From Octopus vulgaris (taxonomy: Eukaryota), in assembly GCA_951406725.2 (NCBI GenBank), contig OX597814.1, positions 169,218,001 to 169,280,000 of the forward strand: a stretch of 62,000 nt of DNA, given 5' to 3'. Position 1 is the first letter of the stretch. Every line of letters begins with the position of its first letter. The notes beneath the pieces are model-generated. The model worked only from the letters and a program-made list of their open reading frames with translations, did no database searches and was not told the DNA's origin. Shown here one piece after another: positions 6,180 through 54,800 of this stretch. The position numbers and the translations under genes are program-made.

Positions 6180-6896
6180 TTGGCGCAAGAGTGGCTGTGT
6201 GGTAAGTAGCTTGCTTACGAACCACATGGTTCCAGGTTCAGTCCCACTGTGTGGCATCTTGGGCAAGTGTCTTCTACTATAGCCTTGGGCTGACCAAAGC
6301 CTTGTGAGTGGATTTGGTAGACGGAAACTGAAAGAAGCCCATCGTAGTCCAACCCATGCTAGCATGGAAAACGGACGCTAAACGATGATGATGATGATGA
6401 TGATATAACGGGAAAGTTTACGAAAATAAACAAAAGACGAAGGCAGGTGGAGTACAAACAAACAAATGTATTAGTATAGCGCTCAGGAATAGAAATAGAA
6501 AAAGTCTTTTACATTTCAAGCCTACGCTCTTCGACAGAAAGATACACAGAAAAATACAAGGAGAGAAACAAGGAGAGAAAAAAAATGCGTGTAGGAGCTA
6601 ACGATCTATCATGGCGTCCTGACTTCGGACAGTGGTCAGACGCGAGAGGGACAGTAGGGGAGATAACAGGGTCAAGTGACTTCCAATATACCCCCCCCCC
6701 CCCGCCCCAAAAAAACATTGCTTGACAATCGATGCTGGTGTGCTTATGTCCCCATAACTTAGTGGTTCAGCAAAAGAGACTGATAGAATAAGTACTAGGC
6801 TTACAAAGAATAAGTCCTGGGGTTGATTTGCTCGACTAAAGGCGGTGCTCCAGCATGGCCACAGTCACATGACTGAAACAAGTAAAAGAGTAAGAG
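6180..6896 (+). mobile_element. SINE family A copy with inserts in its internal microsatellite
   Basis: Head at 6180-6345, family C tail plus (GAT)n at 6345-6404, Penelope-like insert at 6405-6690, then the 3' body at 6715-6896. Confidence 0.8.
6505..6542 (-). ncRNA. Variant hammerhead-like motif (degenerate) in a Penelope-like pseudo-LTR fragment
   Basis: Minus strand: tcttt CTGTCGA a GAGC gtag GCTT GAAATGTA aaaga. Stem I is tcttt/aaaga and stem II is GAGC/GCTT; A6 is replaced by U. Confidence 0.5.
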
Positions 6897-7411
6897 TATA
6901 GTCATTGCTAAAATACCTTCCATTATAAGGTCTGTTTAACCAATACTGACCTGGGGTTAAAAAAACCAATAACAACCTTCTACTTTATGAGTCAATGATA
7001 GCAAAAAATTTGTTGTATTTTAACTAATTATATCTCTTCACAACAAATGTGTGGCCTTGAATTAAAGTTACAAAATCATTATTATTAGAATTTTTCTCTC
7101 TCCTTCTTTTTCTATATGAAGGAGAAACAATGTTGAGAGTGAGGAATACAAATCACTTTAACCAACCAACTAGCTAGCCAACCAACTAACCAGCCAACCA
7201 GTCCAGCCAGCCAACCAGCCAGCCAACCAGTCACACTAGCTTGTTCAGAACTGCAAATTGTTAAACTCACAACACTCCCTGAATCTTGCTGTTTTGAATG
7301 AAAAATCATAAAACTCAGCAGCTCTTAATACTTCCATTATTTGCTAATCAAGCAAAGAAAAATTGTAAAATTGCCATTCATTCTAGCTCACATTCAGAGT
7401 TCAGTATTCAT

Positions 7412-8042
7412 GGCATTATAAAACCTAGAGGGTATGAAAAAAAAAAAAAAAAAGGAAATTTTTAATGGTCTTTTCTGACATGGCTAAATATTGATTGGTA
7501 ACATAGGCATAGGATCATAAATTCTACAAAAGGTAACTCTGAATAAGATTCTTAAATTATTCCTAGTATTTGACTGGTGCTATGTTTTAATGACACTGGA
7601 AGGACAACTAGTACATCCAGCCCCAGTGAGATTTCTGCTGCAATGTAAAAAGGACACATCTTAATAAAATACCCAAAGGTATGGCTGTGCGATTTTGCAA
7701 CTACACGTTTTGAGGTTCAGTTCCGGCATTATAAAACCTAGAGGGTATGAAAAAAAAAAAAAAAAGAAAAAGAAAATTTTTAATGGTCTTTTCTGACATG
7801 GCTAAATATTGATTGGTAACATAGGCATAGGATCATAAATTCTACAAAAGGTAACTCTGAATAAGATTCTTAAATTATTCCTAGTATTTGACTGGTGTTA
7901 TATTTTAATGACACCGGAAGGACAACTAGTACATCCAGCCCCAGTGAGATTTCTGCTGCAATGTAAAAGGGACATATCTTAATAAGATACCCAAAGGTAT
8001 GGCTGTGCGATTTTGCAACCACACGTTTTGAGGTTCAGCTCC
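7412..8042. repeat. Head-to-tail direct duplication of about 315 bp (7412-7724, 7725-8042)
   Basis: The two copies align end to end, with a few substitutions and a different poly-A length. Confidence 0.9.
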
Positions 8043-8589
8043 ATGGAGCGACACCTTGGGCAAATGTCTTCTCCTATGTTAGCCCAGGCCAGTCAACACT
8101 TTGTGAGTGAGGCTGGTTGACGGAATCTGTCTGGAAGTTCATACTGTCATTGACTTTGTCCTCCTCCTCCTCCTCCTCCTCCTGCTTTTTACTTGCTTTA
8201 GTCTTTAGACAGTGGCCATGCTGAGCATCGCCTCGAAGAGTTCTTCGTAGAATGAATTGACCCCCAGTAAACTCTTTTACTCTTTTAACTTATATGTACA
8301 CACACATACACAAACACAGGGTTCCTCACAGTTTCCACCAACCAAATTCACTTACAAGGCAGTGGTCAACCCAGGACTGCTGTAGAAGACACTCGACCAT
8401 AGTGCCATACGGTGGGACTGAACCCAAAACCATGTGGTTGCAAAGTGAGCTTCTTAACCACCTTTAGTCGAGCACCTAGTACATTCTGTTAAGTAGTTGG
8501 TGTTAGGAGGGACATGAAGCCATATAAGCCATGTGAAAGCAGACATTGGAGCTTGGTACAGTCTCCCTGCTCACTAGTTCTTGTTGAGC

Positions 8590-51392: not shown

Positions 51393-51489
51393 TTGTTTTA
51401 TTTTTATTTTTCCCCTACATATATATAATATAAACCATTGGTCACTCATTGGCTGGACATAAACTTAATTACTTATATATATATATGAT

Positions 51490-51830
51490 CATGGTGATAT
51501 ATATATATATCACTGTGATCACCGTGACCGACCAGGCTATCAGATGTTGCTACACATCGCTGGTCACAATGCGCTTCGCATTGTTTTAGCCTACAAATGA
51601 CGCCACCCTGCTGGCTAAGTGAGAAGGCCAACAGAAGAAAGAGCGAGGGAAAGTTGCGGCGAAAGAGTACAGCAGGGATTGCCACCCCACCCCCTGCCGG
51701 AGCCTCGTGGATCTTTAGGTGTTTTCGCTCAATAAACACTCACACTGCCTGGTCTGGGAATCGAAACCGCGAGTCCGCTGCCCTAATTGCTGGGCCATTG
51801 CACTTCCACAAGCAGTAAAGGGTACAAGAA
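51490..51830 (-). mobile_element. SINE with family D head and RTE-derived tail
   Basis: The head matches 23863/31691 (GAGCGAAA.CACCTAA..TCCACG). The tail GAAGCGCATTGTGACCAGC matches 176-194. Confidence 0.8.
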
Positions 51831-54800
51831 TCCGGGCATTTCTAGGAAAGTTCTTCATTAGAGAGAGAATAATTTTTTTATGTTAATGGTGCTACTAAGA
51901 ACACAAGAATGATGCTCTCTTAATTGTTTCTAATTTTTCACCTCCTTGCTTAGCATGGCTTAGAATAAGTTTTCATAGCTTCTTTTGTAATTTTAATTTA
52001 TCCATCACATTTGAAAAGGAATAAAATCTATCTGTCACAAGGGGTGTGGTGTTTCATGGGAAAGGTGTTGAAAAGGACATTCATCATTGATAAGGACCAA
52101 AGCTGTGACAGATGAACTTTGACAAACTAATTAATCAATTAGTTAATTAGCAATTATTTAATTAATTGATAATAAAGCTGAAATAAAATACAACTAATGA
52201 ATGCATTTTAATTGATAGCTTAACCTCCACCATAAAGTGCAACAATATTCGTTTCAGTGCTGGAATTCACATTCAGAATCTTCTAAAATAGATAATCGTT
52301 ATTGGCCCAACCATACAGAAAATATATTCCTTAATACTATCTTTGCAATAAATGTTTTCTGCTATAATTGCTGAAATAACTGAAATAATATTTTTTTGAA
52401 TAATGACTTATATATATATATATATATATATATATATATATATATATATATATATATGTATATATATGTGTGTGTATATATATATATATATATACATATA
52501 TACATATTCCGTGATTGTTACCTACATCACCTCACTGGCACTTGTGCTGGTGGCACGTGAAAAAACATTCAAATGAGGTCGTTGCCAGTGCCGCTGGACT
52601 GGCTCCTGTGCAGGTGGCACATAAAAAGCACTATTTGACCGTGGCCACTGCCAGTACTGCCTGACTGGCCCTCATGCCGTGCCGGTGGCACGTAAAAGCA
52701 CCCACTACACTCTCGGAGTGGTTGGTGTTAGGAAGGGCATCCAGCCGTAGGAACTCTGCCAGATCAGATTGGAGTCTAGTGCAGCCATCTGGTTTGCCAG
52801 GCTTCAGTCAAATCATCCAACCCATGCTAGTATGGAAAACAGACGTTAAACAATGATGATGATATATATATATATATATATATATATAGGCGAGTTAAAT
52901 TAGAGGTTATAAAAACCGTCTAAGGGATACTTGTATCCAATGAATTAACTGGTGTTTTACCTAAAGGTTTTCAGAGGGATAGCATGTAACATATTGGAAT
53001 ATCCTTACTTTTTTTCTTTCTTTTTCTTTACTTTTCTGCTCTGATGAACTTCCACTATTTAAGTTGGCTTAATTAATTATTTACAATAATAATAATTATT
53101 ATTATTGTAGTAATTAGGCCTGATTATGCCCTAAATAGCCTCAACAAAAACAGCTGTTAGATGAGATAATGTGTCTTTTTTATAATCAATAAATAATAAT
53201 TGATGTTTGTCAATTATCAATTTTATCTCCACTTTCTTATTTTCCTTATGTGTGTGTATGTGTGTGTATTACTTATTTAGGACTAAATCAGCAAATGTGG
53301 ATAATTTGAAGGAATTTAGGTACTAGTTCTTGCAGATCAGGTGATCATATAAAAGCTTTTCCATTGGCTTCTATGAATTACACCCACCATTTTAAAAAGG
53401 TAGGAAGGACATCTTGGATATTGTCGTGCCAGTAGATACACTGTATTTGAAATTAAAAAGATTGGAAAATTATACCTGAAAAATCTTTAATCATTGGACA
53501 ATATAATGATAGATGGAAAGTCTTTTACCATTCTTTCATACTGTGTTCAGTGCCTGCAAGGAGTCTTTACACTGTTATTTGATATTCAAGAAATAACTAC
53601 CAAATCTCTCTTCAACCAGAAAGCTGAAGTTGTATCTTATTGGCACACTGGTTTTCTCCCCATTTTCTTAGTGCCGTTGTAGTAACCAACTGCAAAGGCA
53701 GCATGACTTCCAGTGTCTGAACACTGGATTAGGAAATTATAAACTGCCTCAAGAAAGCCATGTGTAACCTTTGGAAGACACACAAAAATTTTTTTCAAGT
53801 AACTATTTCTCCCTCCATTCCAAGATCCTTGTCTATCAGACAAGTCTATGCTTCTATTTCTTTGTATTGGTGCAAAACACGAATCATACTCTACAGCTGG
53901 ATGCCCTTCATAATACTAGTGCTATACAGTGTGTACTAGGTGCTGTTTTTCATGCCTCTGGCACTAGCATGGTGAACAAGTAACTTGCAAGAGAGGAAGA
54001 GAACAAAGGAAAAGAAAAGCCCACTTTACAAAGTGATTGACTATTTGAGAAAGGGGAGGTAGCTTTATGCAAAGTATTGGGAGGTAAAAGTATGAGAGAT
54101 GGACGAGCATGCATATCTTACTCTAGAGGAGATGCGTGACGACTCCACATTATATAAAGGTGGGTAAGAGGAGCTGTGAAGAAGTAATGATGGGGTGCTG
54201 GAAAAAAAAAAAAAACTTTAAGGAGCAAGGAAAGTGAAGCTTCTTGAAGTATAACTTTCAGTCGCACATTACTGATTATTCAAATGATTGAATAAATTAA
54301 ATGGTATTTTGAAATTAAGAAACTCAAGAGCTATAATTCAAGAAGGTTCAGCTTATACATGTGTGTGCACACACGTGTGTGTATGTGTGTGTGTGTGTGT
54401 GTGTGTGTGTGTGTGCGTTCATGCGTGTGTGTATGTGCGTTCATGTGTGTGTGTGTATGTAAATACACACACACGTACAGACAGACAGATACACACACAC
54501 TGATATATATATATATATATATATATGTAATCTTTTATCACAGCATATTCCATAATGGATTCACAGCATCATGCATAATGAACAGCATAATTAATCACCA
54601 CTGCTGCTGTTCTTGCTTATGTTCAATATATTGATCTTCCCTAGTGGTTTGCTATTATTCCTGGTGAACAAACTTACGAACTATCTATCTACCTTGTGTG
54701 CATGTCTCTCTGTTTGTTGGTTTACCTGCCTCTCTGTATGTCTGTCCATTCATCCATCTATCTATCTATCTATCTATCTATCTATCTATCTATCTATCTA

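Follow-up and report, generated by a model that had tools for sequence, protein, structure and literature searches.

Minimal hammerhead ribozymes of Penelope-derived repeats form an established class that is abundant in metazoans, and their wide distribution among animal genomes has been known since 2014 (PMC4209133). The hammerheads of Penelope-like elements (PLEs) are of type I, with a palindromic and near-absent helix III, and they have been reported to occur also pairwise, with 100-700 bp between the motifs of opposite strands (PMC4209133). In PLE insertions, inverted copies with 5' truncation are known, as well as a tail confined to one end and a preference for microsatellites, (TA)n included (PMC8557442). 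In vitro, both target strands are cleaved and extended, and two internal start sites of the reverse transcriptase (RT) delimit the tail (PMC11167929). For vertebrates, hammerhead-bearing repeats have been proposed to be non-autonomous Penelope derivatives (bioRxiv 10.64898/2026.07.22.740005). Here we describe a 62,000-nt stretch of the Octopus vulgaris genome (GCA_951406725.2, contig OX597814.1, positions 169,218,001 to 169,280,000 of the forward strand; hereafter the window, in which all positions are counted), where several families of short repeats carry hammerhead motifs of the minimal type I kind. These repeats are probably short non-coding retroelement insertions made by PLE machinery, with RT and the GIY-YIG endonuclease acting in trans. 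Their setting is a eukaryotic window of 30-45% GC, rich in (TA)n, (CA)n and triplet arrays, in repeats resembling short interspersed nuclear elements (SINEs) and in fragments resembling long interspersed nuclear elements (LINEs).

Motifs were identified with a descriptor of the Penelope-type minimal hammerhead, which calls for C[U/C]GANGA and GAAA separated by a helix II of up to 130 nt, then a palindromic helix III and H, and for a helix I no shorter than 3 bp. Eight instances at five loci were found in the window, while the chance expectation, obtained from 300 dinucleotide-preserving shuffles within 2-kb blocks, was a mean of 0.08 and a maximum of 1 match per window. Wherever a core pair has a palindromic helix III (eight cases), a complementary helix I is present too. 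The bare string CTGANGA...GAAA occurs 11 times against 5.5 expected, a number reached in 2 of 100 shuffles, and a strict version of the descriptor (perfect closure at 10.1-11.1 and a helix I of at least 4 bp) had no match in the window. Neither a window scan tolerating one core mismatch nor a covariance model of our own (R1, run with filters off) added any site; under the latter, the background reached up to 13.5 bits, and the element E35 gave a partial match only, also of 13.5 bits. The margin over chance is large, although the descriptor is post hoc, and the core observation of hammerhead motifs in the window holds. The instances are distributed over three families with fold-back copies (A, B and C) and two single elements (E35 and E45), as listed in Table 1.

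An earlier note on this DNA, made from the letters alone, had put forward five strong and six weak hammerhead sites. The five strong sites were recovered exactly by the descriptor, with H17 where the note had placed it (35450, 39363, 49907 and 50509). To call them well-formed was an overstatement, considering the U4C substitution at 39298/39030, the 3-bp helix I at 35346, the scant helix II at 45610 and the mismatched 10.1/11.1 positions at 49857 and 50440. None of the weak sites held up, and all six were missing from both the mismatch-tolerant scan and the covariance-model search. Those at 6505 and 10478 are not hammerheads, but belong to a 200-nt repeat present there twice (copies 87% identical); helices I and III are missing, and the core is mismatched at two or more positions. 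GAAA and helices are absent at 37770 and 51240, and the site at 31079 has A6G, GUAAA and no U16.1. Lastly, the site at 53041 is no hammerhead either (G12A, helices I and II absent), but belongs to E53, probably a decayed relative of E35 as judged from a weak homology between the two elements (z 3.4-3.5). At its 3' end, E53 meets a (TG)n tract.

Apart from family A, the core (C3 U4 G5 A6 N7 G8 A9 ... G12 A13 A14 ... U16.1 H17) is intact, i.e. in E35, E45, B and C, and also in a family found elsewhere in the genome (family D, see below). In family A, both arms of copy A1 have the core CCGAGGA (U4C). The topology is that of type I, with an open helix I formed by sequence 5' of the core and sequence 3' of H17. 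Contiguous helix I measures 3, 7, 7, 6 and 4 bp in the window motifs, the 3 bp being those of E35, and 5 bp in D, and each of its seven pairs differs on both sides when families are compared. In four families, helix II takes the shape of a long hairpin with imperfect pairing (30-86 nt, the 86 nt being reached in E35); in E45, it is nearly absent. Its 10.1-11.1 closure is a G-C pair without a bulge in E35 and in the direct copy of A1, and G-U in the inverted copy of A1. In D, an extra A precedes G10.1-C11.1, while C (50440) has a mismatched A/C position followed by a 4-bp GGCC helix, and B (49857) an extra or mismatched A followed by A-U. Such a mismatched or extra base at the junction of 9 and 10.1 is typical of Penelope-element hammerheads (PMC4209133). 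Helix III is formed by palindromes of 8-10 nt, namely ACAGCUGU, ACAAUUGU, ACAUAUGU, ACGUUGACGU, ACUCUGAGU and ACUGAUCAGU. In RNAcofold, these pair intermolecularly in all six motifs, with 8/8 to 10/10 bases paired in the predicted dimers, which are 4.8-11.8 kcal/mol better than two monomers; these structures show helix I in trans, a consequence of the nested folding.

When MAFFT was applied to untrimmed motifs, their 3' halves were misplaced, and a hand-trimmed alignment of the six distinct motifs was used instead. In this alignment, which was fitted to the proposed structure and is biased towards it, 87% of the cells pair, as compared to 55% in shuffles (0 of 500 reaching the observed value) and 28-39% with the partners slid, and in 14 of the 16 pairs both partners vary. 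As far as this alignment can tell, the helices covary between families, and it is between families that covariation of the stems, on which the earlier note had let its reading depend, was assessed.

The second line of evidence is the shape of the insertions. A1, A2, B and C share one layout: between two stretches of (TA)n lie an inverted and a direct copy, parted by a spacer, and a tail on one side only, extending the direct copy. The fold-back with a one-sided tail and (TA)n contact, which had been described from the letters as a recurrent architecture, is thereby confirmed for these copies. The tail is 72-105 nt long and found at one end only, making the termini asymmetric by its length, contrary to the symmetric terminal inverted repeats that would have spoken for DNA transposons. 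In family A, the direct copy runs past ...CTCTTRYATTTAT into a tail of 101-105 nt and then (TA)n, while the inverted copy stops at the same base of ...CTCTTRYATTTAT and meets (TA)n directly. This break base is identical in the independent copies A1 (38808-39624) and A2 (35672-35985), whose tails are ~92% identical. A2 itself comprises two copies of different length (~142 and 64 nt), both 5'-truncated, which have the same outer end as A1 and fall short of the hammerhead. B and C have single-base break points of their own between tailed and untailed copy, and in C it is the copy on the minus strand that is tailed. The fold-back arms are 97% identical in A1 (38804-39136 and 39192-39524), 99% in B (49328-49634 and 49799-50105) and 99% in C (50279-50404 and 50426-50551); A1 and B should consequently be young. 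All defined outer ends abut (TA)n, except for the 5' end of E45, which lies on a (GA)n-like tract (its 3' end is on (TA)n 45444-45472). Tracts of (TA)n with at least five units make up 1.4% of the window, and 11 of the 31 (TA)n tracts in the window touch element ends.

No BLAST similarity was found between the bodies of different families. The tails of A and B are related to each other (z = 5.3, 0 of 300 shuffles), as is the A tail to the 3' end of E53 (z = 4.4). The statement that the flanks of the motifs are unrelated is thus true of the bodies, but not of the 3' tails of A and B. With an nhmmer profile built from the A and B tails, no solo tails were found in the window or in five further loci fetched from the same genome. 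Supported elements are confined to 35.3-53.2 kb of the window, and the system can accordingly not be called window-wide, as had been suggested. None of the copies is crossed by a stop-free frame (all frames were checked), and the longer open reading frames (ORFs) of the window gave only weak Pfam matches, to zf-CCHC and Exo_endo_phos, in a LINE-like region.

Table 1. Hammerhead-bearing and related elements. Positions refer to the window, except for family D, which lies in another locus; C3 and H17 are positions of the hammerhead core.
Feature	Positions	Strand	Details
E35, single non-coding copy between two (TA)n tracts	35305-35636	+	motif 35343-35453; C3 35346; H17 35450
A2 inverted 5'-truncated copy	35672-35813	-	~142 nt, without hammerhead; ends ...CTCTTATATTTAT against (TA)n
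A2 direct 5'-truncated copy with tail	35821-35985	+	copy 35821-35884; tail 35885-35985 (101 nt); then (TA)n
A1 inverted copy, no tail	38808-39136	-	motif 38958-39037; C3 39030; H17 38965; core CCGAGGA; 10.1-11.1 G-U
A1 spacer between head-to-head copies	39137-39191		55 nt
A1 direct copy with tail	39192-39624	+	copy 39192-39519; tail 39520-39624 (105 nt); then (TA)n
A1 direct-copy hammerhead motif	39291-39370	+	C3 39298; H17 39363; core CCGAGGA
E45, single copy, 5'-truncated at the hammerhead	45473-45618	-	motif 45574-45617; C3 45610; H17 45581
B inverted copy, no tail	49334-49634	-	motif 49520-49582; C3 49576; H17 49526; outer end on (TA)n 49322-49333
B spacer	49635-49798		164 nt; may be extra 5' sequence of one copy
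B direct copy with tail	49799-50188	+	copy 49799-50099; tail 50100-50188 (89 nt); then (TA)n 50189-50209
B direct-copy hammerhead motif	49851-49913	+	C3 49857; H17 49907
C direct copy with tail	50210-50404	-	copy 50282-50404; tail 50210-50281 (72 nt), next to (TA)n 50189-50209
C direct-copy hammerhead motif	50317-50394	-	C3 50390; H17 50321
C inverted copy, no tail	50426-50548	+	motif 50436-50513; C3 50440; H17 50509; ends ...GATCAAT against (TA)n 50547-50576
E53, probable decayed relative of E35	53030-53248	+	CUGAUGA at 53035; AAAA for GAAA (G12A); helix III ACAGCTGT
Family D element	L002 4449-4830 (OX597840.1)	-	C3 at 4658; in or next to a kinase gene

For comparison, five 20-kb loci, amounting to 102 kb of genic Octopus vulgaris DNA from the same assembly, were reached via SINE-derived proteins. 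Families A-C are absent from these five loci, in which one clear extra example of a hammerhead was found, i.e. family D, which lies on another chromosome (OX597840.1). Its motif consists of CUGAUGA, an unpaired A, GGC...GCC, GAA, ACUGAUCAGU and A, with CCAUG/CAUGG as helix I. The element is situated between two (TA)n tracts and has a 40-nt inverted partial copy, which in this case bears the tail. In pairwise alignments with shuffles, the sole approach in which the likeness was seen, the D tail resembles the tails of B (z = 5.3) and A1 (z = 4.0), in sense orientation only. Another of the loci (L001, 6489-6533, plus strand) holds a compact candidate with CUGAUGA and the helix III ACAUGU, scoring 24.6 bits under our own model; this was left uncounted, as its helix I is weak and it has no obvious fold-back or (TA)n flanks. 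A metagenome scan with a 25-mer of family A found nothing.

How PLE machinery could have produced such insertions can be outlined as follows. In the RNA of each family, a first 3' end point would follow the minimal type I hammerhead at a distance of 40-190 nt, and the conserved 72-105 nt tail would extend from there to a second end point. The endonuclease would cut both strands of a (TA)n microsatellite, and cDNA would be primed from both strands at either of two fixed sites near the RNA's 3' end, i.e. before or after the tail. Both cDNAs, variably 5'-truncated, would then be joined head to head, leaving the inverted and the direct copy separated by a spacer, with the tail on the direct copy alone. 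The palindromic helix III would pair between two RNAs; cleavage, if any, would need two copies, in tandem or in trans, and would process longer precursor transcripts. Within this scheme, it is the dependence on PLE RT and endonuclease, the two-site and two-strand priming and any cleavage that we infer.

Several points weigh against an origin from PLE machinery. An ORF for RT or GIY-YIG is absent from the window, and an autonomous partner sharing the tail was not retrieved; as such an ORF is lacking and the frames are full of stops, the elements are at most non-autonomous or truncated. The partial tandem duplication known as the pseudo-long terminal repeat (pLTR) is absent, and no direct repeat of any element body was found in the window. 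Target-site duplications are unreadable within (TA)n, and the tails of C and E45 have no significant similarity to other tails. With 72-105 nt, the tail is longer than the 30-40 nt described for endonuclease-bearing (EN+) PLEs, and the preference for (TA)n is documented for Naiads, which are without canonical hammerheads, whereas hammerheads are present here. As for the motifs, every one in the window carries some defect and none is textbook-perfect; in family A, catalysis is doubtful in view of the U4C substitution in both arms. Both the descriptor and the trimmed alignment were devised with the candidates already in view. Rfam 15, run on the whole window and on pieces of 1.3 kb and of 111-181 nt, detected no hammerhead, whether cut at the gathering score or relaxed to E<=10, and gave sub-threshold microRNA-hairpin matches on the fold-backs instead. 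This silence is uninformative, considering that the clean D motif had no hammerhead match in Rfam either, and the Rfam hammerhead models appear to be blind to the minimal variant. Furthermore, sequence upstream of H17 is retained in the copies, and the templates would therefore have been uncleaved, religated or tandem. Such templates agree with in vitro work reporting that insertion can do without cleavage (PMC11167929), as well as with the recent copying of the U4C family.

A somewhat different reading of the same anatomy is that the elements are heavily 5'-truncated inverted and direct terminal fragments, i.e. pLTR ends, of autonomous PLEs located elsewhere, inserted by the same mechanism and constituting no separate parasite. 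We regard this as possible but rather unlikely. A2, as a shorter version of A1 with a common 3' end, is what truncation would give, while in A1 and B, despite their youth, the 489-554 nt nearest to the 3' end are free of coding sequence, and the tail is common to three families with unrelated bodies, as in non-autonomous elements that borrow the 3' end of a partner. Neither of these two counterpoints is decisive, since a pLTR may be both long and non-coding; that unrelated bodies carry a common tail would favor dedicated non-autonomous families over truncated autonomous ends, though not decisively. Retrozymes have also to be considered, all the more so since their derivation from PLE pLTRs has been proposed (bioRxiv 10.64898/2026.07.22.740005; PMC7229834). 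The elements would then be solo or broken units of metazoan non-LTR retrozymes, i.e. tandem repeats of 150-450 bp whose hammerhead-excised monomers are circularized and reverse-transcribed. The type I hammerhead with a palindromic helix III and the units of 150-550 nt with low GC agree with this, but no tandem arrangement or direct repeat of any unit exists in the window, the motifs are of the minimal PLE kind and not canonical ones with loop-loop contacts (PMC7229834), and a head-to-head layout with a one-sided tail is foreign to retrozymes. We therefore find a retrozyme origin improbable, and of the two element kinds named in the earlier note it is the Penelope-like type that stands, by motif and insertion anatomy, and the retrozyme-like one that does not.

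Fold-back DNA transposons that target TA, of the kind known as miniature inverted-repeat transposable elements (MITEs), would also produce long, near-perfect inverted arms and ends in TA-rich DNA, and hammerhead-free fold-backs do occur nearby (50577-50916 and ~51030-51425). The hammerhead-like strings would then be incidental. This is hard to reconcile with a 72-105 nt tail at one end that is conserved between copies and families, with A2 being two unequal truncations with a common outer end, with E35 and E45 being single copies without inverted repeats, or with a motif count ~60 times that of chance and helices covarying between unrelated families, and we consider it very improbable. That the motifs are mere chance matches in AT-rich, repetitive DNA is more improbable still, and close to negligible. 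The barely enriched bare string and the silence of Rfam point in that direction, the latter saying little for the reason given above, but five independent loci stand against the 0.08 expected once a palindromic helix III and a helix I are required, and all eight instances lie inside four of five families with Penelope-type anatomy. Two other readings were tried and rejected: Helitrons, by eye, as there are no 5'-TC/CTRR-3' ends, and a PAc-like arrangement with an ORF starting in helix II, as there are stops in all frames.

Starting from the preferred explanation by PLE machinery, a further-reaching and tentative one, with the odds rather against it, would be that Octopus harbors a guild of dedicated non-autonomous, PLE-dependent elements. 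Unrelated bodies and hammerheads would here share one 3' tail module of ~85-105 nt, serving as an RT recognition and initiation cassette in a SINE-like form of borrowing, and initiation before or after this module on the two target strands would give the fold-backs. If this is true, the recent U4C copy of family A would imply that the elements can move without ribozyme catalysis and retain the motif for another role, e.g. RNA dimerization.

Other repeats of the window were also recorded. Directly downstream of family C are the two fold-backs without a hammerhead mentioned above (arms 89% and 82% identical), the first of which begins at a (TA)n tract. Long hairpin repeats at 17327-17477 and 33580-33718 have sub-threshold Rfam microRNA matches (MIR6274/mir-3910 and MIR5048); they look like MITEs or head-to-head SINE pieces and have neither an adjoining (TA)n nor a hammerhead. 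SINE-like repeats are abundant, with 39754-40398, 47852-48217 and about nine others (e.g. 6177-6346 and 10205-10374). For a SINE-derived ORF on the minus strand (47855-48217), the matches are entries labeled 'Hypothetical predicted protein [Octopus vulgaris]' and a single protein of O. bimaculoides; since accidental SINE ORFs match such hypothetical predicted proteins, the Octopus vulgaris annotation holds repeat-derived gene models. The region 55099-62000 is LINE-like, with gag-like ORFs (zf-CCHC, 19 bits) and an Exo_endo_phos fragment (17.5 bits), neither of which reaches its Pfam cut-off. The region, apparently made up of two partial LINE-like copies, is not Penelope-like; a protein search with the LINE-like ORF1 gave one unrelated match. 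Furthermore, a tandem array of at least 23 copies of a 36-37 bp unit occupies 26073-27092, and a long GAT/GAC triplet array at 8705-9242 gives a poly-Asp ORF of 219 aa, which is probably a non-coding microsatellite. An intact ORF of 151 aa at 42516-42971 is, by its look, a candidate C-terminal part of a DDE transposase, with no Pfam match at E<=0.01.

A full-text literature search found no paper describing hammerheads in octopus. What is reported here is a known kind of element recognized in a new host, a cephalopod, and as minimal PLE hammerheads are known to be widespread in animals, their presence in octopus is to be expected rather than surprising. Some details are unusual, namely the long helix II, the long shared tail and the U4C family. 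The locus offers clean, young examples (arms 97-99% identical) of the head-to-head scar with two end points predicted by the in vitro work on a lizard PLE in 2024 (PMC11167929), together with one tail module on unrelated hammerhead-bearing bodies and a recent copy made despite a core substitution. These have a bearing on how PLEs start reverse transcription, and on whether PLE hammerheads must cleave. For the routine annotation of cephalopod genomes, it is plausible that such elements are mislabeled, as the earlier note had supposed, since Rfam misses the motifs and returns sub-threshold microRNA-hairpin matches.

Compared with the known systems, the closest likeness in the motif itself is to the minimal PLE hammerheads (PMC4209133). 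Shared are the type I topology, the CUGANGA/GAAA/UH core outside family A, the palindromic helix III with predicted intermolecular pairing, the short helix I (3-7 bp), the large sequence differences between families of one genome, and the occurrence as single motifs or as opposite-strand pairs a few hundred bp apart. The unpaired base that often lies between 9 and 10.1 in PLE hammerheads has its counterpart in D and perhaps in B. The octopus motifs differ in that helix II is 30-86 nt in four families, as opposed to the 6-8 bp described, in that one family is U4C, and in that no full ORF-bearing element is attached. A cephalopod host is not mentioned in the descriptions compared. With the metazoan non-LTR retrozymes (PMC7229834), the elements have in common a small unit size, a high AT content, the lack of coding capacity and a type I hammerhead, and a dependence on PLE enzymes has been proposed for retrozymes as well (bioRxiv 10.64898/2026.07.22.740005). 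Retrozymes are found as tandem arrays with canonical hammerheads and circular RNAs, whereas the copies described here are dispersed, single or head-to-head, and have minimal hammerheads. The schistosome SINE-like elements Sm-alpha and Sj-alpha are likewise short, interspersed, non-coding repeats with a type I hammerhead, in their case a canonical one preceded by a Pol III promoter (cited in PMC6765202); no tRNA-like promoter was seen in the octopus elements, though no search aimed at one was made. In insertion anatomy, it is the EN+ PLEs (PMC8557442, PMC11167929) that are most similar, apart from their partial tandem (pLTR) and ORF, neither of which is found here. Common to both are the variable 5' truncation, the abutting inverted and 5'-truncated copy, the tail at one end and the bias towards microsatellites, and the two alternative 3' end points of the octopus elements are consistent with the two RT start sites (PMC11167929).

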